A DNA stretch of 64,000 nucleotides from Ylistrum balloti (lineage: Eukaryota): the NCBI RefSeq assembly GCF_031769215.1, contig NW_026781876.1:1054001-1118000 (forward strand), in the 5' to 3' direction. The position numbers and the translations under genes are program-made. Below the pieces are notes generated by a model. That model did not search any database and had not been told where the DNA came from. It worked only from the letters and a program-made list of their open reading frames with translations. Positions 12,501 to 57,500 of this stretch are shown one piece after another. Each line of letters opens with the position of its first letter. Position 1 is the stretch's first letter.

Positions 12501-15500
12501 TCAAATTATCCTTCTTATTCCTTGCTGCAAAGCATGCTTGCTGTGACTGGCTATTTTTTCCGAATGTGAGCAACTAAATCATTCTGTCCACTAATTCAGG
12601 TAAAGCAGCCATCAGCTGTACGTACTGGCCATGTCTGACTAACTGCTGATACAACAGCCACAGTCTGTACTAACACAGGTTGCAAACTGACAGTATTTGT
12701 AACTTTATCAGTCAAGGAAAGACAAATCAAAGCCATGCAGATTTTGAAATCCTCAACAGCCAGTTCTTGAAATCCTCAACATGCAGATCTTCTTGAAATC
12801 CTCAACATGCAGATCTTCTTGAAATCCTCAACATGCAGATCTTCTTGAAATCCTACACAGGAAGATCTTCCTGAAATCCAAGCCATCAAATTTGGAATGG
12901 CTGCATGCAAGATCCACTAGAATAATGGCAGAGTTTTTCTTCCAGTAAATAATTTCTTTTCTCGATTTTATTCTCAACAACATGCTTTTTTTCATATTCT
13001 GTCAGATGTCACAATACACATACAACAAAGTTCAACATGCACATTCTGAGAATCAAAGATTGCCGCACCTTGATCGTGATGAATCAAGTTCATCCTCTGA
13101 CACAAGACGGAGGTAGCCAGCCTCAGTGTCTGATACATAGGTGATCATCTGAACTGGGCCTTCTGATTGGATGTCATAGCTGTTGAATATTCAATCAATG
13201 TCTTAGACTTTAATCGCTATCATCAAATTATAATTTTGTTTGTAAGTCATCATAAACAAAAACAAAATTGTTTGATGAAAAGTAGATACCTTGGAATTTC
13301 TAGTAAACCAGAAATTATATACAAGATATTTTTCAATTGCAGCTTCATGTAATTTTTATTTTAATTTTGTCATTGGAAACCAAATGTTTCAAAATTCAAA
13401 TTGAATAGTTCCATGCAGAATCAAAAATTGTATTTACGCTCCAGGTACGCCAGGTGGAATTGGGAGAACATCCATCGGTGATGGCTCCTTAGCCCTGGGG
13501 GCCTGGACATGTCTCACTGGTGATGGACTCGGTGGCTGGACATGTCTCACTGGTGATGGACTCGGTGGCTGGACATGTCTCACTGGTGATGGAGTCGGTG
13601 GCTGGACATGTCTCACTGGTGATTGAGTCGGTGGTACCTCGTCACGTTTTACTGTCTCTGGGCGGAACATTGGTTCCTGTGCCACAGGCTTAGGTGAAGG
13701 TTTGTGTGGTGCCACTGGTTTGGGTGATGCCACATGTTTAATTGGAGCCTTGGGTGGCTTACCAACAGGTGGCAATGATTTCTCTGGAGTTTCAAATCTC
13801 CTCTTAGCATCAGCCACATTCTGAGGCAGTACAGTTTCCTCCTCTTCCATTGGTTCCTCTGCGGTTGGTGGTGCTGCCTCAGGTGTTGCCATGGGAACCA
13901 TGGGTGGATGTGCAGGTGTTATATGTGCCTTTGTTACAATCCTAACAGGAACAAGGCAAGTCGATATCAGATATAACGCCAGCAAAAGGATATACCAAAA
14001 TATTTAATTCCTTTCATTATTTTAGTCATCAACGTGAAAAGTAATTACTTTAATCATACATTTGAAAAATCAATGAAAAGCTGCAATAAATAAAAAGAGA
14101 GAAAAAAATCACATTTGAATTCTCTGCGGAAAACCATTGACACACAAACACTGATTGAGAAGGAAAGATGGGTCACGCCACACCAGATAAACGGTTCACT
14201 CACATGCATTATCAAGAGATAACTGAAATAATCAAACATTGATTCCTCTATCACAGAAAACCACAGTTTTATGTAGAGCCTAAGCCCTATAGAATTCTGA
14301 TCATATCAGTACTAACTTGCGACGTTTGATGACAGGAGAGGATTCTACTGATGTGGAGGCTGGTGTAGGGGGAGGAACCCGTGGAAATGGGCGGTTATAC
14401 GTCTGCTCACTGGGTTTCTGAGTATGAGGCTTCGCCGCGGGGCTACACAGAGTCACAGTCACAAGAAGTCAGACAAGTGTCATGAAAACCTTCTGAATAC
14501 TCTTTGGTAATCTTTATAAAATATTCTGGATTCTTTGTAATTTCTAAATTTACCTAAATTCGATGAATATCTTTCACCTACATCATGTTTTTCAGAATAA
14601 CAGTTTCAATATTTAAGCATGAAATGATTACATAACAGAAGAAAATAAATGAAGATATGAAAGGACTAAAATCTATATTGTATAATTGACCTTGACTTAA
14701 TGTTTTGCTGACCTTGACAAGGTCATCATTTTCTATACTAGTTTTTCGTATCTGTCGATAGCTTTAGAGTTCAGCAACTGTTGGTGGTTAATCAGATATA
14801 TCTGCTTACATCTATTTACATTCAAAATTATTTGCATATTAAGTCTTCATGCTGCTGCAGTGCATTTTGGGATAAACTACCAGGCCATATGTGTTATAGT
14901 ATCACTTAAGGCAATACATGTCGGATCCCTTGTTTCTAATCTGCTACTAATTCGGCAAAAAAGCCCATGCTTGGTGAACTAATGCTGATACATTGTCCTG
15001 TAATAAGCCCATAACAATCCTGGAGTAATGTGTTGACTTCAAGCTTTATTACTGGAGATAGATATTAGCCAAACCTTGATATCACAGTAGAAATCAAATG
15101 AAATTACTTTAAATTCAAAATCCCATCACTATTTTAAGTCTAAGCTGAGTTGCAGTAACTAATATAAATATGAACAAAATCAACATGTAGTTGGCTATTT
15201 TCATATTGGAAATTTCTCAAATCTCTTTGTAGCTAAGTACCTACAATATTTATAATTACTCGTCTTTAATGTTTGATGTAGTACTAAATTGGGGCAAAAT
15301 AAAACCACTGCAAAACATAATGTATTAACATATTAAGCTATGAAAAATTGAAGTTGTCTTTAAATTTTAAATTGAAGTTGTCTTTAAATTTTGAATTGAA
15401 GTTGTCTTTAAATTTTAAATTGAAGTTGTCTTTAAATTTTTAGGAATCAAGGTTTTTCTGTAAATGTCTAAGAGTGGAAGAATGCTTTCATGCGATTAAA

Positions 15501-30500: not shown

Positions 30501-33500
30501 GGTGTGTTTCTGAAAGAGTATTACAACCGCTGCATCAGAAATAATGTTAAAAGAGGAAAAAATGACAGAACAACAGAAAGAACATATAAAGACTGACGTT
30601 CGAATTCCGAACAAAAAAGTATCCGAAAGTAAACTAAGGCTTAAAAAAATAGTTAAGTAGATATATGGATGAATATTCCCATTCAAATTTGTCATATTTT
30701 CAACAAAATAAATTAAATACTGAAATGATGGAGCATTAAAATGCATCTTTACTACCAAGAGGCCATATTTAAAATAATGCACAAATGTAAAAAAATTACG
30801 TAGTTCATAAAACCATACAACAAAAAAAGATAATGCCTAATTGTAAAATGGAATCAGTTCTGGACGGAATTTTTGTAAAAATTTTCTTCTTTCATCGTAT
30901 TTTTTCATTTTTCAGTGTTTGTTTTTTGTAATTACATGGTAAGGAGGATCTGTAGGTTGGGCAATAGGAGGAATGGACAGAGCAGACTGTCAAAAAGGGA
31001 GCTAACTCTGTGATCAACCTTACCTCTAACATGTAAATATGATGAACTTTCGGCAACTCCGACTTCGTTAGTAAAACGACAGGTGTATCGGGCTGTGTCC
31101 TCAGAGAATGTTTCCTCAATGGTCAAGGTCGCACACCCAAGATTAAACTTGGTCTCATAGTCAGGGCTGTTAAGGGGCAGGTTGTCCTTGTACCATGTGA
31201 CCTCTGGTGGGAGTTCACTTTGTACTTGACATTCCAATGTGACCCTACAAAAGAAGTGAAGATTAATTATTTTTTCTGGTTGCCATGGTATTATAAATTA
31301 CACCTCAAAATGACATCATGCTGATTAAGATCGTGATTATTGTTACAATAGAAATGATATCTTACTTTTCACCCTCCATCACTTCTGCGTCCCTGAGATG
31401 CAGCGTGATTTTCGGTGGTTGCTTGGCAACAGCAGCAGATGCTGTCACGGTAACCTCCATGGGAACAACATCCTCTTGGACTGGTGGCGCCATCTGAATG
31501 TAATAATAATTGGTTAGCTATAACTCCCAACACTTCCATGGACAACTGCACCATTTATGAGATAACGGATATAGTTAGTAAATTATGTCGATTTTGAGAA
31601 AATCCATCAGACGATGACGTTTGGCTCAAGATTAAATCTTTTAACTATAATACTACAAGCCCTTCTAGTTACTAACCTGGTTGGTAAGGAAATGCATTAG
31701 CAATGTTAGTAGATATTACACCAAGCCAAGTGACTTTTAGCCAGGAAAAACTTATCAAATTCAAAAGAATAAAAGTTAGGAGAGTTAGAAAAGCTTAAAA
31801 ATGGAAATCTCCTTGGAAAAGACATTGAGGTATTGTTGGAGGGTTTCTTATTTTCAATGGTTCAAATTTCTGCTGTTTTTATGAAAAGCTTAAAGCAAAA
31901 TGACGCATTTTCCTAGACATCATGTTATTAACATAGTTTCTAAATGGCAAGTTATTCTCAAAAATGGCAAAACTCCTACGAACAATTCTAGATTGTGAAC
32001 CATCTCAACCTGTCTATTTACATCTGTATGACACTTCCATGGCTGGAGTTCACAAACTGAACACACTTGCAAAAATTCCGCACATCTATGTATTACACGC
32101 CATACAAGGAACTGACCTGTGCCTGTACCAGAGTTTGGTGTATTTTGGCGATCTCGGCATCCATCTGTTGGGCAGACGTCATCAGATCCTGGTTACTGAC
32201 AAAGAGGTGATGAACCTTGGTTGGTCCTTCATTACCGTACAGCTCTACAGCTAGCTCTGATATGTGTTTCAGCCGGTCTTCCTGTCGAGGTTTACCCGTC
32301 TCCATGAAAGAGTTGAGCGAGCGTGCGAGAGTTTCCGCATCCTCTGGATTACGGCACTCCGGCGTACGCCGACTGATGTTGATCAGAAGGGTGTTTCCCT
32401 CCCGAATCCATTGCTCTGACTGAAAACGTAAGATAAACTTATGGATAACTAGCATAATAATGTGTTCACAATTCTTACATATTTATCAAAACACCAAACA
32501 TTTTATAGAAAATACTGTGACCTTCTTTAAAAATATCTATTTGGTAGTCCTTTAGCATATACATAAAAACTGACTTAGAGTTTGAAATATGCTGACATGT
32601 TGGTATCTTGTTGTTTCCGTCAACTTGGGTTTTTAGTATAGTATAACAGTAACAGAGCTAGCCATCATTTCTATCGCAGAAATCAAAGATATCGATAAAT
32701 GTTATGTGATAATTTTAATGGATGTTATAAGGTAAGCAGGGCCGATACATTTGATCCTAAATGAGTTTACCTCTTCTATAAGGGTGAAGTATGTGATGGA
32801 AACATCGAGTAACATGCGGTAGTTGCCAACACTCGTATGGAATGTGCTCCATTTCGTCTTCAGAAGATCAATTTCGCGTCCTATATGGATCGCGTCATAA
32901 TGTTGGTCCTGTACCATCACCTGTGCAGTGCTGGTGAACATATCGATCTTCTTCTCTATCAACTGATGGATCAAACAAACAACATATCAGTGAATCAAAC
33001 AAAACATAAGCCAGTTTATACTGTGAGCAGTGATAGCACCAACAATCCAGTTAAGGCGACAATTTCGCTTAAAATAACATACTATCCTCTATTTTATTAA
33101 ATATAAATATTGTTTTTATGGATTCCATACCTGAACAGTCATTTCAAACTGTTTGAAGGCCTGTGATGTCATACGGGCAGCTGGTAGTGAGTTACCATAG
33201 CTACCGCGCCGGGCCTGGAGATGATGGTGGAGGTCATCAATCTCGGAGTGGATCTGGAATACAAGATATTAGAAATGAGGAAATGACAAAAATGCAACCA
33301 AGGTAATTTATGCCTGAAATTGCCATAAACTTAAATAGAAATAATTCCCTATAGTAATGTTACTATCAATTTGGGCCAGGACTTGACGAGATAGGACCTT
33401 CTATGAAGAGGGCAAAAATAAAAAAAATGAAAATTTAAAAAAAAAGGTCTTGAAAATGTAATAAAGAAATTGCCTAAATTTCTGAATAAAGTATGCATCA

Positions 33501-36500
33501 CCATATGGTCACCATTATAAGACAAATGTCAGAAATAAATGCAAAAACAGTCGAGAAGTGATCTAACCTGTCTGAGATCATAGTTAAATTGACAGATCTG
33601 GAGGTTCTGCTTGAGTCGTTTCTCTTGTTCCTCCCATGCTTGGTTCCACCTCTGCTTGTACTCGGCGGTCACCATGAGGACACGCTCCACATCCTCCTGT
33701 GCTGCTGCCTCAGCATCCTGCAAAAGGTCAACATTATAGGGTTAATGGTCATAAAATTACATGACAACAATATCTGACCATTAAATTTTCACTGTGATTT
33801 TTTTTAAGCCTTTCTGAAAATCAGCATTAAAATACACATCACTGAAACTTTTCATCCACTGTAAAAGGTATTAACATATTTACCGTTTGTCGTACACGGA
33901 CGACAATTTTCTCTCCCTCGCCTGAGGTGAAGTTTATGAGTGAGGAGACTTCTTTCTGTTTACGTTTGTGCTCCTCCAACAAACTCTCGGCAAGCGAAAG
34001 GTCAGATGGCAGTTCTGACTGAGTGTATTCCTTCTCTGTCTTCTCAATTAACTTGTCCAACTGAAAACACAGTTAACTCCTCATCAAATTAAAATCAAAC
34101 TCATAAATGCATATTGATTTCAAATAACACATTGCGAAGTACATCATCTTTCACAGCTTCCCTCACATTCTCACTTTTATTTAGCAAATTTCACATATGG
34201 AAGTTTCAGTTTGAGATATGTATCAATTTCTAATTATTCAAGCAAAGAGAGATTTGAAGTAATTATTTATGAAATATTATATTAATGTTTGATAATTTAA
34301 ACACTGATCTATTTATCCTGACAACTGAATTTTAATGTTCAGGCCAGCTACTGTCAATCAATTCATTAACAAGAAATGAGCGAAGATCTTGCCCTTCATT
34401 ACTGAGCCAGACAGAGAGAATATCATTTCAGTTCTAACTGACTATTATAAATCTGCAGTCCAACGTTAACTTCAGATATATGAAACCATTCTGCGTGACT
34501 ATATCCGAATAATGATACATACCTGGTCCAAGTTACGGAAGAACTGAATGGTCATCTTAATGAGTATGCGATACTCATGTATGCGCGCCTGGAAGCGCTG
34601 CCGAACCTTGACAAGCTCGTTGACAATCATGTCTTTTTGTCCTTTGGTATCTCCCTTCATTTCCATAAGCTCAGCGGTACTAAGATGCTTGTCAAGTTCT
34701 TCAATAGCACTCTGTAATCATGTCAACATGAGGTCACAACTGGGGTCGCAATTGGGGGTCACAACAGGGGTAACAACTGATGTCTATATAAATTTCAGTC
34801 ACATAAAAATAGAACAATGTTCCTTACCTGATTTTGCTTTCCAAAAATTGCCTCAAGATAAAAACCTTGAACTTTTTAATTGGATTTATATTTATTCCTT
34901 TGAAACGTTTTCATTAGCTTTGTAATATTTGATGTATCTACGACATAATTTCATCTCATTTTATTAAAGCTTTTAAACAATTTAGAACAAAAATCACCCA
35001 AACATTTAGCAGACATTAACAAATAAAACATCTGGCTGATGACGTTTTTCAAAATACCAAAACCTTTTTCTTAAGTTTTAGATTTTAAAAATAATATGAA
35101 AAGAACTTAAGGAAAAAACACTCGTAATTCAATGAACATACCTGTTGGTTTTGAATCAGAATAGAACTTTTCCGTGAAATAAATATTCACAAAGAAAGAT
35201 CAAGTATATAATTAATAAGAATAGGAAACAGGTTTTAAGACGATCACTACAAAAAGTCTTGTCTAAGTTTACAGCCAGACAATTTTATTCAAACTGATAT
35301 AAATATCTATACATTACACACAAAACATCCACAATTACATGTAAGATATATATATACATAGAAAAATTTAGAAAAGTTTATCAAAAGGAGATGAGGAGGG
35401 AATTCAAAAGGAAGATATGATTTTCCAATGGCAGAAATGCAGTTTGACAATTCAAAGGATAGAGGGTGAAAAACAACAAAGAAAAGTGTACTTCCATTCC
35501 AGATCAGAACCTGGGAGATGGGGTAGAAATGTGGGAAAGACTTGAAGATTACAACACCTACACACCACAACAACTTATCAAGAGGTACAGACTCAATAAA
35601 GAAATGTCAAATAGTACAGCGAGGTAAATGAGTACAAAAAGGTCATGCAGATTTTGGGGTATAATCCTCGTATCCTCACAATAATCAGTAGGGGAGTTTT
35701 TACTCACCAAAATGGATAGGAAAGGAAAAGTTTTGATTTTATCAAATAAATGCAGCTTTACACTGCAGATAATCTAATATTGATGTTTCCTCAAAATATC
35801 TGAGACACCAATTTCTAACCAAGTCATCTTTGGAAACTAAAATTGGGCATCTAGGGAAAATAGCAGGAAAACTCATAAACTAAAACACAAAAATAAAAAC
35901 AAAGTAAATAAAAGAAAAAGTTTCAAAATTCAAGTCAGATATCAAAAACTGACCATTCAGGATCAGGTGAAAATGTTTTTTTTTTCATTTTCCATTTTTG
36001 AATTTTCAGAAAATGATGTTCTGTCATCCCAAAATTGCAGCAATTACCTTAAATGCTGGTGTAAAATCATCAATTTTTTTCTGCAAATCTTCAGCCGATG
36101 TTGTAGAGTTACCTAGGTAACCGGCTATATTTGGGAAGAAGAATTCGTTCTCGGTCGTCATGACCCGATCTATGGTCTACAATGTGAGGACAAGAGATAA
36201 CAGGTGTTAAACTGACCAACCAATCAAACAACACTAACAATTTTCCTGCAATACCAGCTTTGGGGGCCACCAAGAGGCACAATAGATTTGTCTAGTGATT
36301 GAAGCATCCAATATATTTTTCACCCTTGTTACAGGACCTCAATTCACAGCTCTCAGAATATTGGGATGGGTTTTTTTTTTTTTCAAATGTGAAAAATTTT
36401 GAATATCAAATTTAACGGAAATTCTGGAAAATTGAAAAATTTAACGGAGAAAATAATTTTCTGTATAGATCTAAATCTTAATGAGTATACTAAAATCTGA

Positions 36501-39500
36501 ATGTAGTTAAGGAGAGGACTATTTTCCAGGAAACATCTGTTGAAAGCGAAAGGCAAAATTAGTGAAGCCAATATTGTATACAAATCACAGACATTTCAGG
36601 CACACAAAAAGCAATACTGACGGAGACTTATTACAAAGTCCACAGTCAGCTCTGATACAACAGGAAAACCGTCACCCAACTATAGATATACACATTAGGT
36701 ACCTCGAATGTAGGGGTAAACTCATCGAGTCTGTGCTGGAATTCATTGGCCGTCTCTATGGATGTACCCAAGTCCCCGCCAATTACGGGGAAAAAGTCGT
36801 TCTCAATTTTCAAAACCCAATCTATTGTCTGAAAAATATAACAATCTCCTATAAATTTCATTTTCACTGCCATATTTTTTCAGTCTTTGCACTGCTGGCA
36901 AAAAGCTGGCAGATTTCAACAAAGGAATCAAACAGAGTGACTTTATATAAATAATTGCATTTTAGTTTAAAGCAGCTATGTTAAAATCTATTATCTATTA
37001 ATCCTAAAAGTCAAAATTTGCTATGAAATTTGTCACCAAACACAGGTATTAGTATAAAAGCAAGTTTTAAAGTCTCTACAACACCCATGTTATTTTTGTT
37101 AAGCAAAATGGAGAACAACTTTTTCGCCGTTATCATTTTCTTGTGAGAAAGCAAAGTTGGGAGTTCCTTCTTGACTGCAATTTACTAACAAAATCTAATT
37201 AAGTCATCCTTCTTATGTCAATATAATTCTGAAAAGTTGAAAAATCAGTTCAATATATCTTGCTAAAACCATCCATACATTAGACATGCAAAAAGGTGTT
37301 CTCTTATATCAAGTATATATATTGAACAACATACTGCAAATCTGTTATTTTAGTGAACATCTTATTTTCAACTGTTAATCTACTGTCTTACCATGGAAGT
37401 ATGTTCATGACAGTAAAAACCATTAAAATTTTAGCTAAACTTATCAAATTGTAGCCTGTTGGTCAAATACTCAAAAGCTTAATAAGCTGTTGCAACACTT
37501 TTGAAAATTTACTAAAAATTATCCAAACATTTTGAAAATCAATTACAACATTAAGACATAAAAACTTTTCTTTTCAAACTTAAACTAAATGAAAATACTG
37601 AGACAGCTGGTTATTGAAGTTTGAAGATTTTGAATTTCCTTTCCAGTGAAACAAAATTAACCATATGTTGGTATAGTATGACATAGTCAACAGCTTATTC
37701 ATGTATAGGATTTTAGAAACTAATTCTTGTTAATTATCTATGTTAAACTATTACAAAAGTTTTTTAATCATGATTTTTACATAAAAAAGCAATAAAAGAG
37801 AAGACTTTTCCACTGAAATAAAAACGATGTTACCATATTTATCCTACAATAGACCCAACAAGCCAACACATCACAGGCACCATTTTTTTAAAAGTTCAAA
37901 CTTCAGCAGTTTTATTACATCAATATAAATGGTTGGCTGATTACCAGGCATGGGCTTATTACCGGGCATGGGCTTATTACCGGGCATGGGCTTATTGCCA
38001 GACAGATACAGTAAATTAAACAAAAGTTACTGTAACATAACTACAACCATTACCTACAGGTTAGACATGTACAATGTTAAACTTCAGCTATCATACGGCT
38101 GTTCATTATCTATGTAACAGTATATTCAATTTCAATTTTTTTACAAAGTGTCGTAAATTTGAAACCATACTGACAATGTATCCCATCATACCTTGCGGGC
38201 ATCCTGGACGAACTGATGCCACTGTGATTTGAACTGACGACTGGTGGATACCTTCTGTTGCCATGACTCCCACACCGTCTTTATGTAGTTCATACGTTCA
38301 CTGTATTCAGCGACTATCTTCTCCACAGTGAGGACAGACTCCTTTACGTTCAGCGTTGAGTCATCTGTAACCTGTAATTTTTTATAAGAAATTAGGTGAC
38401 GAAGCATGCAGCTTTTAAACTTCAACTACAGGCAAAAGTTATTAGAAACCTATACTCCTTATATAAATAATGTTTATACATGTTTATGGAAATCAATCAT
38501 TATCTTATTTATTTTTTTAACAGGTTGGATGTTTGCTATTACAGCCCTTCAGCATATATGTTGTTAGGAGATGTACAGAAGCCTGTACTTGAGAGACTGG
38601 GCTGCAGTATCTGTCAAAACACCCTTCACTGTGTGCTTGATAAGATTTATATAACAAGTATTCAATAAAATGTTCTATTTTTACCTTAATGTAATAATTT
38701 ATAACAAGAGGCCCATGGGCCTTAACGGTCATCTGACATAAAATTTTGAACTTGAGAAGAAGTTAAAAATGTGTTTTCAAGATGGCAGCCATTTTGGATT
38801 TCGGACCAACCCGAAATTAACAAACTTTAGTCAGGATCATGTCACGATCATTTCAGGTAAGTTTCAGCTCAATGAGACATGTAGAACTTAAGAAATTGAA
38901 AATGTTTACGACTGACGACATACGACGTACGACGCCGGACAAAAGGCGATCACAATAGGTCATCAGACCCTTCGGTCAGATGACCTAAAAATGCTTTACT
39001 GTGAAGAATTCTGAAAATATCTTAATGTGGAATTATTCTAGAAATGTCTTAACATTTAAGAAGTCTGGAAAGTGTCCTAATTCTTGAACTATTTGATTTG
39101 TGTCTAATAATTCTGAAAATGTTGTAGAATTATGTCTTACTGTAGAAGAATTCTGGAAGAATAATTTTCCTTTGTCTTGCACTTCATTGTACAGTTGGCT
39201 GAGCTTTGTGTACATTTCCTCTGTATGGCGCATAGCTTGGTCGGTGAGATCGTGCAAATTCTCAGTCTCCGACGTCAGAATGTGTTCTAGCCCACTCATG
39301 CTAGTAGTTAGCTGTAACAAGTCAAACAAAGATGATATCATTATATGTCCTCATGTTTCTATAGATAATCTATATGTATAAGCTGAACAACATATTATCA
39401 TGTAGTCTTTCAGTTAGCATTCAATAGCAATTATTTCATCACCGTAATTATTATGTTACCGACAAAAAAAAAACACATACTTATGTGTACAATTTCATTG

Positions 39501-42500
39501 ATTAAATTTGTCGGTTCTAGTACCTATATTTAAGCCAAGATATTTTGGTTTTACAAACACGTGCAAGTGCAAACACAAACATGAATGGACCTTATGTATT
39601 TATATCAGAACTCCATGAAAGAAAAAACTTGAAAAAAAATTTTGAGTTTATTGTAAATAATGAAAGAATGAAAAATTGTCTTGTCAAGAGAAACATCTTG
39701 GATTTGAAATTTCTGGTTAAACAAAAGTTTCCTTGATAAGAAAAGCAGAGTTAAAAGTCCAGAATTCTGTTGCTGTTTAATCTAGTCATTACATAATTAA
39801 TCTCTTCTATTAGTAAAACACTGGTTACTTTCAATACTTAAAATTTTCTTAATTACTAAAAATAAGAAGCAAAAAGGTTTTATTTTCCTGAAATCATGCA
39901 GCTGACTTGTATGTGTTCACTTTTTTTTCTCAAGTTTATTCAATCCTCAACAACGGTGAAAAAATGAACACCCAGAAAATAACAATCCAAAAAAGATGAT
40001 TTGCTCACCTGTTGCACAAGCTTGTGGAATGACAGGTAGACAAGGGACAGCTGAATGCGGACCTCAACAATACGATGCAGCTTCTGCATCTGTTTGTGTA
40101 GCGTGTCAACCTTCCCTGCAGCGGTCTGAGCTTCCTGGTCCCCTGACTTGACCAAGTTTACTCCCGCCTCAAACAAGGCTTCCAACTCCGCATTCTTGTC
40201 CTGTAACCACAACAACAGCACATTTTCACTGTTGAGAAATTTTTACTGATCAAAAGAAATTAACCATATTTTACAACTTTTTATTACATATGTCTTGAAA
40301 TTATATCAGTATGTAGACAAATTTTATTTCATTTTCCACCTAAAATGTCTATCTTCACAATATATATCTTTTCTTCGGTACATTGAAAACAAGATAGTAT
40401 ATCTACAAAAGAGGAACTATTTTTCTGACATTTTTTATACGTCATGAATTTGGTCCAATTAAAAATCACCAGAAATTTTCTTTTAAAGGTACCTTGATTT
40501 ATAAGAAATCTTTGTTACTGGGACTTACCCTTAAGTCTTGTTCTAGTTGTTCATGAATTTCTAAGAAGTCCTCCGCTGTTTCAAGGCGAGTTCCCATGTC
40601 CGCATGCTGGCTAAGGGTGGCCTGGCCAATTGATGTCAGCCATGTTTGTAGCTGTTTCAACAAAAGAAATTCAATAAGCGAAACCCTTGTCTTGTCAATA
40701 ATCAGTCAGAGCAACAAAGAAATTGAGGGTAAAAACAACTCTGCTTCAGTTTATCAGACATATGTTCTGAGCCATAGCAGCAGAAACTTGTGTATAAACA
40801 TTCCATCTATTAATATCAGCAAAGTTTTAAGGCAGAGCAAAAACATTTCAATTTGCAAAAAAAATATATATATATCGCCATTAAATTCAGCAATCATGAA
40901 TTCAATTTGTAAAAGTTTTAATTTCCCTACTTGTAAAAATAGTATATTCTCTCAAATAGATTTAATATAGACTAAAAAGTTGATCTCTATCTGTTGTGGA
41001 AATATCGGGTACAAGTTTCACTGTTGTTTCTTAATTCCAGAATTCTTTAAATTAATATTGCCATAGGAAAGAAAGCCTTAAAGATTTGAAGGAAAATTCA
41101 ATTAACAATTTTTTTTTCTTTCACTCAAATAATCCAAAGCAATCTTTAAGGAACAATCAGAAAATGGCTACCAGATGGAAAGATAAACTAACCAGAAGAT
41201 GCAGCAAGGAAGTGGAAAAAACAATTCAAACTAAATGAAGTTGATGAGTTTTATATCAAACTTACGCTGTTGAAGTGTTCCTGGAATTGCAGGTAGGCCT
41301 GGCTTCTCTCCCAAGCCTCTGCCCGTCGCGCCTTGCACAGGGACTCCAAACTAGCACAGCGATCTTGCAACAGAGTCATCTGTCAAAACAAAATGTTATC
41401 TTAGAAAGTTGTACCTCAATAAAAATTCAGTAAATGAAAAAAAATGTATATTCAGCAACAAGCCCAGGGGGCCTAGCTATCACCTCTGACACCCTGGGAG
41501 GCCCGCTTTCACCTCTGACACCCCAGGAGGCCTAGCTATCACCTCTGATACCCCATGAGGCCTAGCTATCACCTCTGACACCCTGGGAGGCCCGCTATCA
41601 CCTCTGACACCCCAGGAGGCCTAGCTATCACCCCTGACACCCCAGGAGGCCTAGCTATCACCCCTGACACCCCAGGAGGCCTAGCTATCATCCCTGACAC
41701 CCCAGGTGACCTAGCTATCACCCCTGACACAAAGAAGTTGGATAGCTGCAATCAAATAACCTTTGCAGGTAATTCAACTGAAGAGGAATCAATATCAACG
41801 GGCTAAATACTAGGTATTGTCTTAATACCAGAACAATACCATTTAATAATTATTATGACATGGAAGAATTTTTATCAACAAGCAAGAAACAGCCACATCA
41901 GAAATCTTTATCACTCCTAAACAGCTAGACAAGGATACTTACCCTGCGTCTGACGCCATCAGCTCCGGGGTCCTCCCTACTGACCCTCTCCAGTAGGATG
42001 CGCCCCTCTCGTAGAGCCTGGGTGGAAGCTTCCACGATGGCGTTAGACAACTGAGCATGCCTGTCTGCAAGCGCTGTACTATTCCTCGGTAAGTCCATGC
42101 TGTTTAATTGGACTTCAACCTGTTCCAATTTTGTTAGAGCCTGTGACAAAAGAGATGATCATTACTAGTAAAAGCCTCATGGTTAAGAATGCATTCTGTG
42201 TTAATGTTATCTTTTTAATGCTATTTCCTTTCCTGAAAACATACAGATCATTTATCACATTTTAACACCTCTATTTAACAGGTTTTACATCCACTATCAC
42301 AGCCAGTCGGCCTTTTAGTAGACAGGACTTTGACACAAAGCAGTAAGGATACAAACTTTGTTATATGAAACCTGTTTTTCGACTGAAGTATTCAATAAGA
42401 CATAAGTGTAATAATCATATAGGGTAGCTTTAAGCAGGTAGTTTTCATTATATTCTGAAGAATATGAGAAAAATATACTTTACACTCTCATGGATGGCTT

Positions 42501-54500: not shown

Positions 54501-57500
54501 TTTGTACTTGTACTAATAAGGCACAAGCTGTTGAAGATAAAAACATGAATCAGTGGAGAAAGTTTCTTTAACAAGTCTTTATCGTCAGTCTTACATCATC
54601 CTTGTGATAGGTTCAAAACAAGACCACCATGCTAACCTGACCATTAAGTACAGACATCTAAAGATGCAGAGAACCACTCGTGGTAAAACAGTCAAACTCA
54701 AAACTCACTGAACTGTTTTCACCTAGACAATTCAAGCACTCGATCTAAATAGAGTCTGCAAAAACCAGATACCAAGTCACTGTTGAGATCCTGATTACAA
54801 ATCTGAAAATTTGGATTATTTTCAATATCTCACAACTAGTTTATCATACCATGTGATTTAAAGAACTTTTCTCAGTCCTGTTCTAAGATTATCTTGACTG
54901 TTGATAAATGACTGATGATACAACATATATCCCTGCTGTTACAGTGACATAAACCCTGCACCTGAAAAGTTTTTCTACTGAAAAAGCCCTAGAATGTTAC
55001 GTCCTGTTAACTACATATTTCCTCTTTGCCAACCCCACTGCCTCCACAAGAAGAAACCAAGTGTCAATGATACAAGATGATAAGACCAAAGGCCTGAGAT
55101 GCTGATAGCTCCACTCAACAATAAAACAGGGTTATGTAACCAAACACAGAGTTATGATATATCACCAGTTCCTTACTGTTACAAGTGATAAGATATAGCA
55201 CAGTGGACATGGAAGATTATCATTGCCATCTGATCTGACTGGGCACATGTTGGTATGACTGCACAGCCTCCTACACCCTAGAGAGCTGTCAATACCCAGC
55301 CAAAGGATTCTGTATCCCTTATCTATCTGTCTGACTCACACTTTCATCTCTCCTATATCTCTAAACTCCAAGACACACACACTTCTGTTACTATACTGAG
55401 GTACTCCTTGTCTGTCCAAGTTTACGACTTGAGCAAGTCTAGGCCAGCCTAATCACAAAACACGCATATTGATATTAGTCTGTGTTATCACTTCATTCCG
55501 AACTGAACCATAATACCCTTACCTCCTCCTACAAATCTGACTCAAGTTGATACATCCCATCTGTAAAATATTGATATAATTTCTACTTCTGGATTCTAAG
55601 TTCCATCCTTAACAGTTATATAGTCATCACTAAAGTCAATGACACTTAACATAACAAACTCAATTGCAAAACGATCATCTTTAATGGAAATTCCAAAATC
55701 CATCCCCTCACTCCCGTCATCTTCCTCTCCCCTCCCCAAACATATCAAAATTAACTTTTCAGAGTGAGAAAACAATAAACAAGAATGAAAACGTGTCAGA
55801 ACAAATAATATAAATTTAAACAGTCAGGCATTTAGGACTGGGCATTAGAATGTGTGGCGGATTGTAGGTCCCCCACAGTCTGTGTTATAACATAGATACA
55901 GTCTAGAATAAACATGACATAGTGATGAGGATCTTATATTACCCACTGAAGAGTCCGGTAATACTAATGCAGTGACTGTTTTCAATTCACATCAACAAGA
56001 AATCCTTTCACAGAAATCAGTAATGACCTTGACAGAACACCTTCTCTAGCTTTCCCCTACCCTCCCCCTCCCTCTTTGTAATAAGAGATAATTAGTATGT
56101 ATTAACACAGCACAACCCTTGTCCAAGAAAGCTATATTTAACTAGGACTACAGTAGCCATCAGCACTCTGTACCTTCTTGGATTACAGTGAAGTAGCTGG
56201 CCTATGTTATGAAATAAATTCTATCTGGAGTAGGGCCCATATTTTTGCCCTATAGAACTACCAGAAAATGCCCTGACTACTCTCCCTGGTTTAGCCCTGT
56301 ATCAAGTCTGGCAGTACTTTACCATAACCACTATATACACAACCCTTTGCAGATTGGACTGTAATAAAATCTGTACCAGGTATTATATAAATACCTACAT
56401 CCAATACTTGGCAGTGCCAGTATCCTAAGGTACACAGATTTTACCTCAGGGACTGGTGCTGTACTGGAGGAGGCTACCAACGGGAGATATCAGACATGAT
56501 GCCACTCACTGCAGGATATTTTTTTATCCTCACTATCTTTGAGATGGGATTCCTGCCAGAAACTGTCTACATTCCTGATATGTTTCTCATATGTTTGTGG
56601 TATGGGATGGTACAGGGTAGCAGTCACGGATTTATTGGCTAATTCTCTGTACCGACCATCACCAGTAACACAAGAATCTGATGATAAATATCAGACATTT
56701 TTTTTTGTAACCATCTCTCATCACTTCCATCTTTATTTTTGGCATAAGTTCATCTTTCAGAAACTGCGTCTTTAACTTGAAGACTAAGAACTATGATTAC
56801 ATAATGCCTATCTATTATTTAACAAACGTAGCACTGTTCATATGCATTTAATTTCTCCCTTTCTTCACAAAAGTAACATTTTGTAATCATTTAATGGGCA
56901 AGTGGCAACTCTTGGACATAACAGAACTCCTCAGTCAACTTATCAGTCAAAGACACTCTTTCAAAACAAGTTTTACTTCTGCCAAACTACAAGCAAATAT
57001 GGTCTCATCAAACAAATGGTCTTTCAAGACAGGTTTTACTTCAGTCAACTTACAAGCAAATGATGGTCTTACAAGCAAAAGATGGTCTTTCAAGACAGGT
57101 TTTACTTCGGTCAACTTACAAGCAAAAGATGGTCTTTCAAGCAAAAGATGGTCTTTCAAGACAGGTTTTACTTCAGTCAACTTACAAGCAAAAGATGGTC
57201 TTTCAAGACAGGTTTTACTTCAGTCAACTTACAAGCAAATGATGGTCTTTCAAGACAGGTTTTACTTCAGTCAACTTACAAGCAAAAGATTGTCTTTCAA
57301 GACAGGTTTTACTTCAGTCAACTTACAAGCAAATGATGGTCTTTCAAGACAGGTTTTACTTCAGTCAACTTACAAGCAAAAGATGGTCTTTCAAGACAGA
57401 AGATGGTCTTTCAAGACAGGTTTTACTTCAGTAAACTTACAAGCAAAAGATGGTCTTTCAAGACAGGTTTTACTTCAGTAAACTTACAAGCAAAAGATGG

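Follow-up and report, generated by a model that had tools for sequence, protein, structure and literature searches.

The 64,000-nucleotide (nt) stretch of DNA analysed here, referred to below as the window, comes from the scallop Ylistrum balloti (contig NW_026781876.1, positions 1,054,001 to 1,118,000) and contains no N. The gene it carries lies on the minus strand, and exons are numbered along the gene. The protein annotated by NCBI as "titin-like, partial [Ylistrum balloti]" (P0125, 7355 amino acids) aligns to positions 3663-58990 of the minus strand in 59 exact blocks separated by 58 GT-AG introns; since this match is exact, the window represents the titin-like gene of Ylistrum balloti. 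Within it, two adjacent exons, 14a (36703-36828) and 14b (36048-36176), are probably tandem-duplicated, mutually exclusive exons in the N-terminal CCDC141/Zormin-type spectrin-repeat region of this giant gene. Exons 13, 14a and 15 match P0125 with 100% identity, and 14a, the alternative chosen in the NCBI model, is its 14th coding block. Exon 14b is missing from that model.

The translated exons upstream of the pair match the Pfam families DUF7799 (E 3.5e-14) and Spectrin_7 (E 1.5e-8 and 9.7e-10), together with weak Spectrin matches, and the exons from about 31300 downward encode I-set immunoglobulin (Ig) domains with proline-rich stretches between them. About 20 exons of CCDC141/Zormin-type spectrin repeats continue into the Ig and proline-rich titin-like exons within one transcript unit, and the gene is an uninterrupted "connectitin"-style gene. 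This combination of CCDC141/Zormin with titin has been described under that name (PMC12198301, PMC12657953). Relatives of the gene in Lingula, Octopus, Saccoglossus, Lytechinus and a weevil carry the names titin or titin-like.

Exon 14a has 126 nt (42 codons, motif FFPVIGGDLG) and exon 14b 129 nt (43 codons, motif FFFPNIAGYLG), so that 14b is one residue longer. Their borders, tttcag/ACA...GAG/gtacct for 14a and ttgtag/ACC...AAG/gtaatt for 14b, consist of AG acceptors and GT donors, both acceptors have a pyrimidine-rich tract, and both exons are in phase 0/0. Exon 13 (38192-38371), which encodes the end of a Spectrin_7 repeat (Pfam PF25101, E 9.7e-10) together with the beginning of helix A in the repeat that follows, corresponds exactly to residues 633-692 of P0125 and ends at 38192 with a whole codon (GCC CGC AAG/gtatga; ...FVQDARK). 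Exon 15 (34523-34711), encoding the remainder of helix B and helix C, corresponds exactly to residues 735-797 and starts at 34711 with a whole codon (ttacag/AGT GCT; SAIEELDK...). Since exon 13 ends and exon 15 starts with a whole codon and 14a and 14b are both in phase 0/0, the combinations 13-14a-15, 13-14b-15, 13-14a-14b-15 and 13-15 are all in frame. The introns 14a-14b (36177-36702) and 14b-15 (34712-36047) measure 526 and 1336 nt. An earlier note on this DNA had described two adjacent phase 0/0 exons of 126 and 129 nt with alignable peptides, and its translations, splice sites and open frames all proved correct.

The peptides of 14a and 14b are identical at 21/43 residues (49%) with a single one-residue gap (BLASTP E 1e-13), and the nucleotide sequences are only about 60% alike, as counted from the alignment. 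The first two letters (AC) and the last two (AG) are common to both exons. In a six-frame search of the window the two exons find each other at E ~1e-9, and the next match has an E of at least 0.09. A third copy (14c) is absent from the window by this search and from the whole 648-Mb assembly, leaving 14a and 14b as the sole copies.

A profile of both exon peptides, searched against 1.84 billion proteins, produced 99 hits, one of them a bacterial TPR false positive. The 98 real hits, most of which are exon-sized open reading frames on animal genomic contigs, split cleanly into an a-type of 42 residues (FFP-x-I-A-G-[ED]-L-G) and a b-type of 43 residues, in which the proline is preceded by one additional residue and L-G usually by Y, N, H or D. 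Both types, in the order a then b, are present at all eight other loci examined. Six of these, L003, L006 (Lingula), L007, L009, L010 and L012, could be read whole including the flanks; both exons are complete there (126 and 129 nt) with AG/GT borders, and equal phase and near-equal length hold throughout. L008 has the same exon pair as L007 (its borders were unread), and L004, a scallop relative, and L011 have a complete b exon with only the 3' part of the a exon on the contig.

The intron between the a and b exons varies greatly in length. It measures 24 nt on the two contigs L007 and L008, 33 nt in L003, 123 nt in L010, 181 nt in L012, 419 nt in Lingula anatina (L006), 596 nt in L011, 630 nt in L009 and about 948 nt in L004. 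The two shortest (L007:513-536 and L003:3114-3146) run from GT to AG. In L003 the gene caller ran straight through both exons, taking a TGA as a sense codon.

Public gene models have each overlooked one member of the pair. On the Lingula anatina contig LFEI02000868.1 (GCA_001039355.2), the stretch between the annotated exon 13 and the annotated b-type exon of XP_013393635 contains an a-type exon (L006:12512-12637) that is intact, has good splice sites and is absent from that model. The Lingula model thus uses b and misses a, the mirror image of the scallop model. In a maximum likelihood tree of 18 exon peptides, all a and all b sequences are split by one branch (support 80/83). Because both types are found in scallop and Lingula, the duplication must have occurred before molluscs and brachiopods diverged; both copies have been retained, and both are under purifying selection.

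Every spliced sequence seen, from Ylistrum and from other animals, carries the exon in a single copy. The a-type is present in Ylistrum, Saccoglossus, P0126, P0047, P0059, P0089 and P0085, Lytechinus has an a-like form with a loop gap of 3 residues, and Lingula and Octopus have the b-type. Alternation between a and b was seen neither among the five annotated Octopus isoforms checked (b only) nor among the 14 of Lytechinus (a-like only). P0126 (JGI, 4653 amino acids) is a related protein with a single a-type exon 14, encoded on a 14,292-nt environmental contig that is almost free of introns and is apparently an assembled animal transcript.

Expression was followed in the RNA of related organisms. 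A sequencing-run index was queried with exon 14b alone, ranking holders of 14b first, and four runs were placed on 33450-39400. Run X10 covers every bin and is DNA. Runs X11, X8 and X9 cover exons only and contain joints with CT..AC ends at the exact exon borders, from which we infer that they are spliced RNA of close relatives. Their spliced contigs stem from three differently coded organisms other than Ylistrum balloti and have no tissue labels; none of the fetched contigs is human-looking.

Both alternatives are joined to exon 15 in these runs. The joint from exon 15 to 14b (34711 to 36048) was found in X11, X9 and X8, and that from exon 15 to 14a (34711 to 36703) in X11 and X8. One contig of X9 (record 18, 1588 nt) has the order 17-16-15-14b-13-12, with 14a skipped, and thus contains 13-14b-15. 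In X11 and X8 the alternatives form separate contigs of 185 and 182 nt, each consisting of a variable part of 125 or 122 nt and 30 common letters on either side. These contigs presumably come from a k=31 graph, and lengths equal to the variable part plus twice 30 indicate a simple two-branch bubble between exons 13 and 15. In X8 the branches have depths of 91.4 and 74.6 and the flank 167.8-190.2, and in X11 the branches have 61.3 and 29.1 and the flank 55-101, so that the branch depths sum to about the depth of the flank. Low-depth contigs of X9 and X11 also span 36177-36292, in the intron block upstream of 14b.

If 14b were a decaying pseudo-exon in Ylistrum balloti, with only 14a functional, it would explain why the sole annotated model for this genome uses 14a, and the RNA described above does come from relatives. 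However, the open frame and intact splice sites of 14b speak against decay, and so do its few differences from the relatives: 2/131 against organism D, 3/131 against organism A and 11/131 against organism B. By comparison, 14a has 8-9/128 differences, and neighbouring exons differ by about 6-10% over comparable stretches (up to 12-16% in two longer X8 pieces). The pN/pS of 14b against L004 is 0.28. Moreover, 14b is spliced in three relatives, and the annotated proteins of Lingula and Octopus are of the b-type. Loss of function of 14b is thus very improbable.

A second possibility is that 14a and 14b are independent cassette exons, so that a noticeable share of transcripts contains both or neither. 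As all combinations are in frame, nonsense-mediated decay would not clear such transcripts, and contigs leave out rare variants, with joints known only among those listed. The structure of the contigs nevertheless argues against it. Neither a 14a-14b joint nor a 13-15 joint is among the joints listed, and either would shift the break points of the contigs. The 14a contig is unbranched over the 26-28 letters of exon 15 that it covers. The exon-13 contig continues past 38198 by eight loose letters, which are the end of exon 13 plus AC on the gene strand, and thus stops two letters into exon 14 at the exact point where a and b diverge; this is incompatible with a 13-15 joint. In addition, the spliced proteins and transcripts of other animals never have two copies or none, and the 24- and 33-nt introns of two species are unspliceable. 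Independent inclusion is therefore unlikely.

Mutual exclusivity of 14a and 14b accounts better for these observations, and we regard it as probable. In each messenger RNA, exactly one member of the pair would link exon 13 to exon 15, and every spliced sequence seen, within contigs that omit rare forms and among the joints listed, has exactly one copy, never both or neither. The either/or switch proposed in the earlier note is in this way supported by the joints in the relatives' RNA, by contigs of bubble length and by the single copy in spliced sequences. The same note gave striated versus smooth or catch muscle as a candidate example of such a switch. Several titin isoforms have been reported to be enriched in one muscle type in a proteome and transcriptome comparison of fast and slow scallop muscle, in which exons were not resolved (PMC5963113).

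Several points weigh against exclusivity as seen in these runs. The runs were chosen for words of 14b, which biases usage ratios; their status as RNA is inferred from exon-only coverage; and the organisms, which diverge from the window by 2-10% in these exons, are not the species of the window. Since contigs drop rare variants and joints are those listed, low-level co-inclusion or double skipping may occur.

Two intronic regions near the pair, 37828-38026 and 38624-39021, reach a summed contig depth of up to ~51,000 in all four runs. Numerous loose ends and back-joints give them the look of high-copy repeats, and within the former a short tandem repeat translates as PMPGNK in one of its frames. 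Further away, intronic tandem repeats at 41483-41751 and 56950-57219 give long repetitive open frames with VIARPPGVSG-like units and units of ~22 residues starting ERPSFACKLTEVKP; they are probably minisatellites rather than coding sequence.

The place of the exon in the protein was modelled with AlphaFold, using residues 610-860 of P0125 for the a form together with eight aligned orthologue segments, and the natural Lingula protein P0100 for the b form. The a-form model (mean predicted local distance difference test score 83.9) has helices at residues 32-95, 107-144 and 150-202. Exon 14a occupies model residues 84-125, in which the final 12 residues of helix A are followed by an 11-residue loop (96-106) and by 19 residues from the start of helix B. 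The Lingula b-type model has the same topology, with helix A one residue longer and again a loop of 11 residues. The best Foldseek matches are spectrin repeats, at an E of 0.01 only; the Pfam Spectrin_7 match covers the preceding repeat, and the exon 14a and 14b peptides alone match no Pfam family even at E 10. An A-B loop of 11 residues is long for a spectrin repeat.

A swap between a and b would thus exchange a segment made up of 12-13 residues at the end of helix A, the conserved A-B loop of 11 residues and 19 residues at the start of helix B; in the b version helix A ends one residue later and the loop residues differ. Since the loop is the most conserved part of both exon types, the functional difference most likely lies in its a/b changes, an acidic residue before L-G in a as against an aromatic or polar one in b, plus one residue. 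If so, exchange of the loop in this CCDC141-type repeat may change a binding partner at this end of titin. According to the model, inclusion of both exons would add an extra helix-loop-helix, in agreement with the expectation of the earlier note that double inclusion adds a helix to the repeat. Its view that a change from Trp to Arg distinguishes 14b did not hold, as either type can have W, R, K, M, L, H, Q or N at position 4, depending on the species. The b exons of Lingula, L007, L010, L011 and L012 keep the Trp.

Because all exon combinations are in frame, frame-based decay cannot police the pair, and attention turns to the intron between a and b. Its end-to-end pairing was assessed as the duplex energy of the first against the last 150 nt, compared with dinucleotide shuffles. 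In the window this energy is -65.8 kcal/mol (z -3.01, 0/100 shuffles as good). Similarly strong pairing is found in L004 (-77.1 kcal/mol, z -3.58), Lingula (L006; -76.2, z -4.39), L009 (-50.1, z -5.25), L011 (-64.0, z -2.91) and L012 (-62.3, z -3.73), that is in six of the seven longer a-b introns (z -2.9 to -5.3); the seventh is the 123-nt intron of L010 (-30.1, z -0.16). At the same loci, the flanking introns 13-a and b-15 have z from -1.98 to +0.78, the scallop 14b-15 intron being unremarkable at -0.11. The other introns of the gene provide a further reference: 41 in the scallop have a mean z of -0.02 (minimum z -2.56, minimum energy -51.1), and 43 in Lingula a mean of +0.24 (minimum z -2.85, minimum energy -59.2). 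In both Ylistrum balloti and Lingula the a-b intron therefore has the strongest end-to-end pairing of the gene. Folding of the whole intron gives z -2.44 in the scallop (0/100 dinucleotide shuffles as good) and -2.93 and -4.27 in two other a-b introns.

The main stem always starts 24-57 nt past the a donor, its far end lies 47-85 nt short of the b acceptor, and its sequences are unrelated between lineages. In the scallop the 5' arm lies at 36652-36674 (intron nt 29-51 after the 14a donor) and the 3' arm at 36235-36257 (59-81 nt upstream of the 14b acceptor), in both the minimum free energy (MFE) and the centroid structure. Two blocks of this intron align with L004 by blastn. One lies directly downstream of the 14a donor (36571-36702; 71% identity over 189 aligned columns, which include 41 nt of exon), and the other directly upstream of the 14b acceptor (36177-36314; a single match of 80% over 285 aligned columns that also takes in exon 14b and 7 nt past its donor). 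The middle of the intron does not align. Both stem arms fall inside these blocks, and the substitutions between the two species preserve pairs. In L009 and L011 a GGAAAA/TTTTCC core is common, with compensating changes around it. The L009 stem looks like the terminal inverted repeats of a small transposon, which counts against a role in splicing. An origin of the stems as chance transposon repeats is weakened by the L011 core with its compensating changes, and also by the fact that the stem blocks are the only conserved parts of the scallop intron.

The a-b introns of 24 nt (L007) and 33 nt (L003) are too short for removal, which is the classical steric solution. The steric limit has been put at ~50 nt (PMC7969005), and the intron of the window, at 526 nt, exceeds it. 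We tentatively suggest that exclusivity is enforced by making splicing from 14a to 14b impossible, either through a short intron or through a stem. The stem would bring the a donor and the branch region of b about as near to each other as a short intron does, and so block a-to-b splicing. In the scallop this path would be ~55 nt by hand count, made up of 28 nt ahead of the stem and 27 nt between the stem and the likely branch A at -31, a predicted site, and would lie near the ~50-nt limit. It is also possible, though short of an even chance, that a rule older than the mollusc-brachiopod split governs the a-b intron, which is either too short (24-33 nt) or has its ends tied by a stem conserved in position and free in sequence. 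If true, an RNA helix would be a functional stand-in for a short intron, and the intron could lengthen without loss of exclusivity.

This mechanism meets with several objections. The 123-nt intron of L010 has no significant stem. Through the stem, donor and acceptor are effectively ~70-140 nt apart, a distance that does not obviously prevent splicing, and looping out an intron can promote splicing instead of blocking it. Finally, the likely branch point is predicted rather than mapped.

The exons could also be exclusive with the stem being incidental or having another role, for example masking the branch point or acceptor of 14b as a switch for the choice of b, while splicing regulator proteins or distant branch points enforce exclusivity. 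Such an arrangement is possible, if on the whole doubtful. It would accommodate the stemless intron of L010, and in the scallop the outer helices of the MFE structure bring the 14b acceptor into pairing with the intron's first 18-28 nt, and a local hairpin covers the likely branch site. There are also precedents: exclusive splicing of Rdl exon 3 is driven by protein, with no role for structure or steric effects (PMC13762713), and exclusivity in OGDH is achieved via distant branch points (PMC7969005). However, the last AG before the scallop 14b acceptor is only 41 nt upstream of it, which makes a distant branch point unlikely there. Across species, moreover, the intron is found in two forms, very short or stem-closed, and a function purely in exon choice fails to explain this pattern, since there is no such element in the species with short introns.

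A docking site with selectors was considered for the scallop and rejected. Neither the regions on the two sides of b (z -0.57) nor other such pairs of regions show significant pairing, and a repeat search of the scallop gave short AT-rich pairs only. A suggestive arrangement is present in Lingula only (z -2.68). There, a copy of the 9-mer GGTGGATGG follows each of the two donors, a and b, at a distance of ~30 nt (L006:12668-12676 and 13219-13227), and the exact complement (L006:12997-13006) precedes the b acceptor by ~50 nt. The arrangement is reminiscent of a docking site with two selectors and is not seen in the scallop.

With this pair, the spectrin end of invertebrate titin, which has been little studied, gains an isoform switch that is deeply conserved but unannotated; public gene models miss 14b in the scallop and the a exon in Lingula. 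Its loci also provide a natural series, from an intron of 24 nt up to stem-closed introns of 948 nt, for studying how two in-frame exons stay exclusive. Tandem-duplicated exclusive exons, steric hindrance and control by RNA structure are all established (PMC9013439, PMC7969005, PMC7797038, PMC6071210). In the literature, no report was found of this exon pair in titin-like, Zormin or CCDC141 genes, and CCDC141, TTN and SESTD1 have no entry in two supplementary lists of human tandem exons. Exons 14a and 14b are a newly recognised, probable exclusive pair, and the mode of keeping exclusivity is possibly new.

CCDC141 of vertebrates, Zormin of the Drosophila sls locus and "connectitin" all have N-terminal spectrin-type repeats (DUF7799, Spectrin_7) followed by Ig domains, and in "connectitin" these are joined to a titin-like Ig and proline-rich region, as in the scallop gene. 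The scallop gene differs by its exclusive exon pair in this repeat, which is not reported in PMC12198301 or PMC12657953. Like classical steric pairs, 14a and 14b are tandem duplicates of equal phase from which one is chosen, and the 24- and 33-nt introns of two relatives fit this class. By contrast, the scallop intron has 526 nt, so that closeness would need a long-range stem, and skipping or double inclusion would be in frame, so that decay of wrong products gives no backup. In exons 17.1 and 17.2 of Dscam, steric hindrance is reportedly combined with RNA secondary structures (Yue et al. 2013, cited in PMC7969005 and PMC13762713). Competing RNA structures act on exons 7a and 7b of ATE1 (PMC7797038). 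The pair described here shares with both systems a conserved intronic pairing associated with an exclusive choice between two exons, kept in place and not in sequence. Unlike these systems, the scallop gene has no docking site with one selector per exon; instead, a single stem closes the a-b intron.

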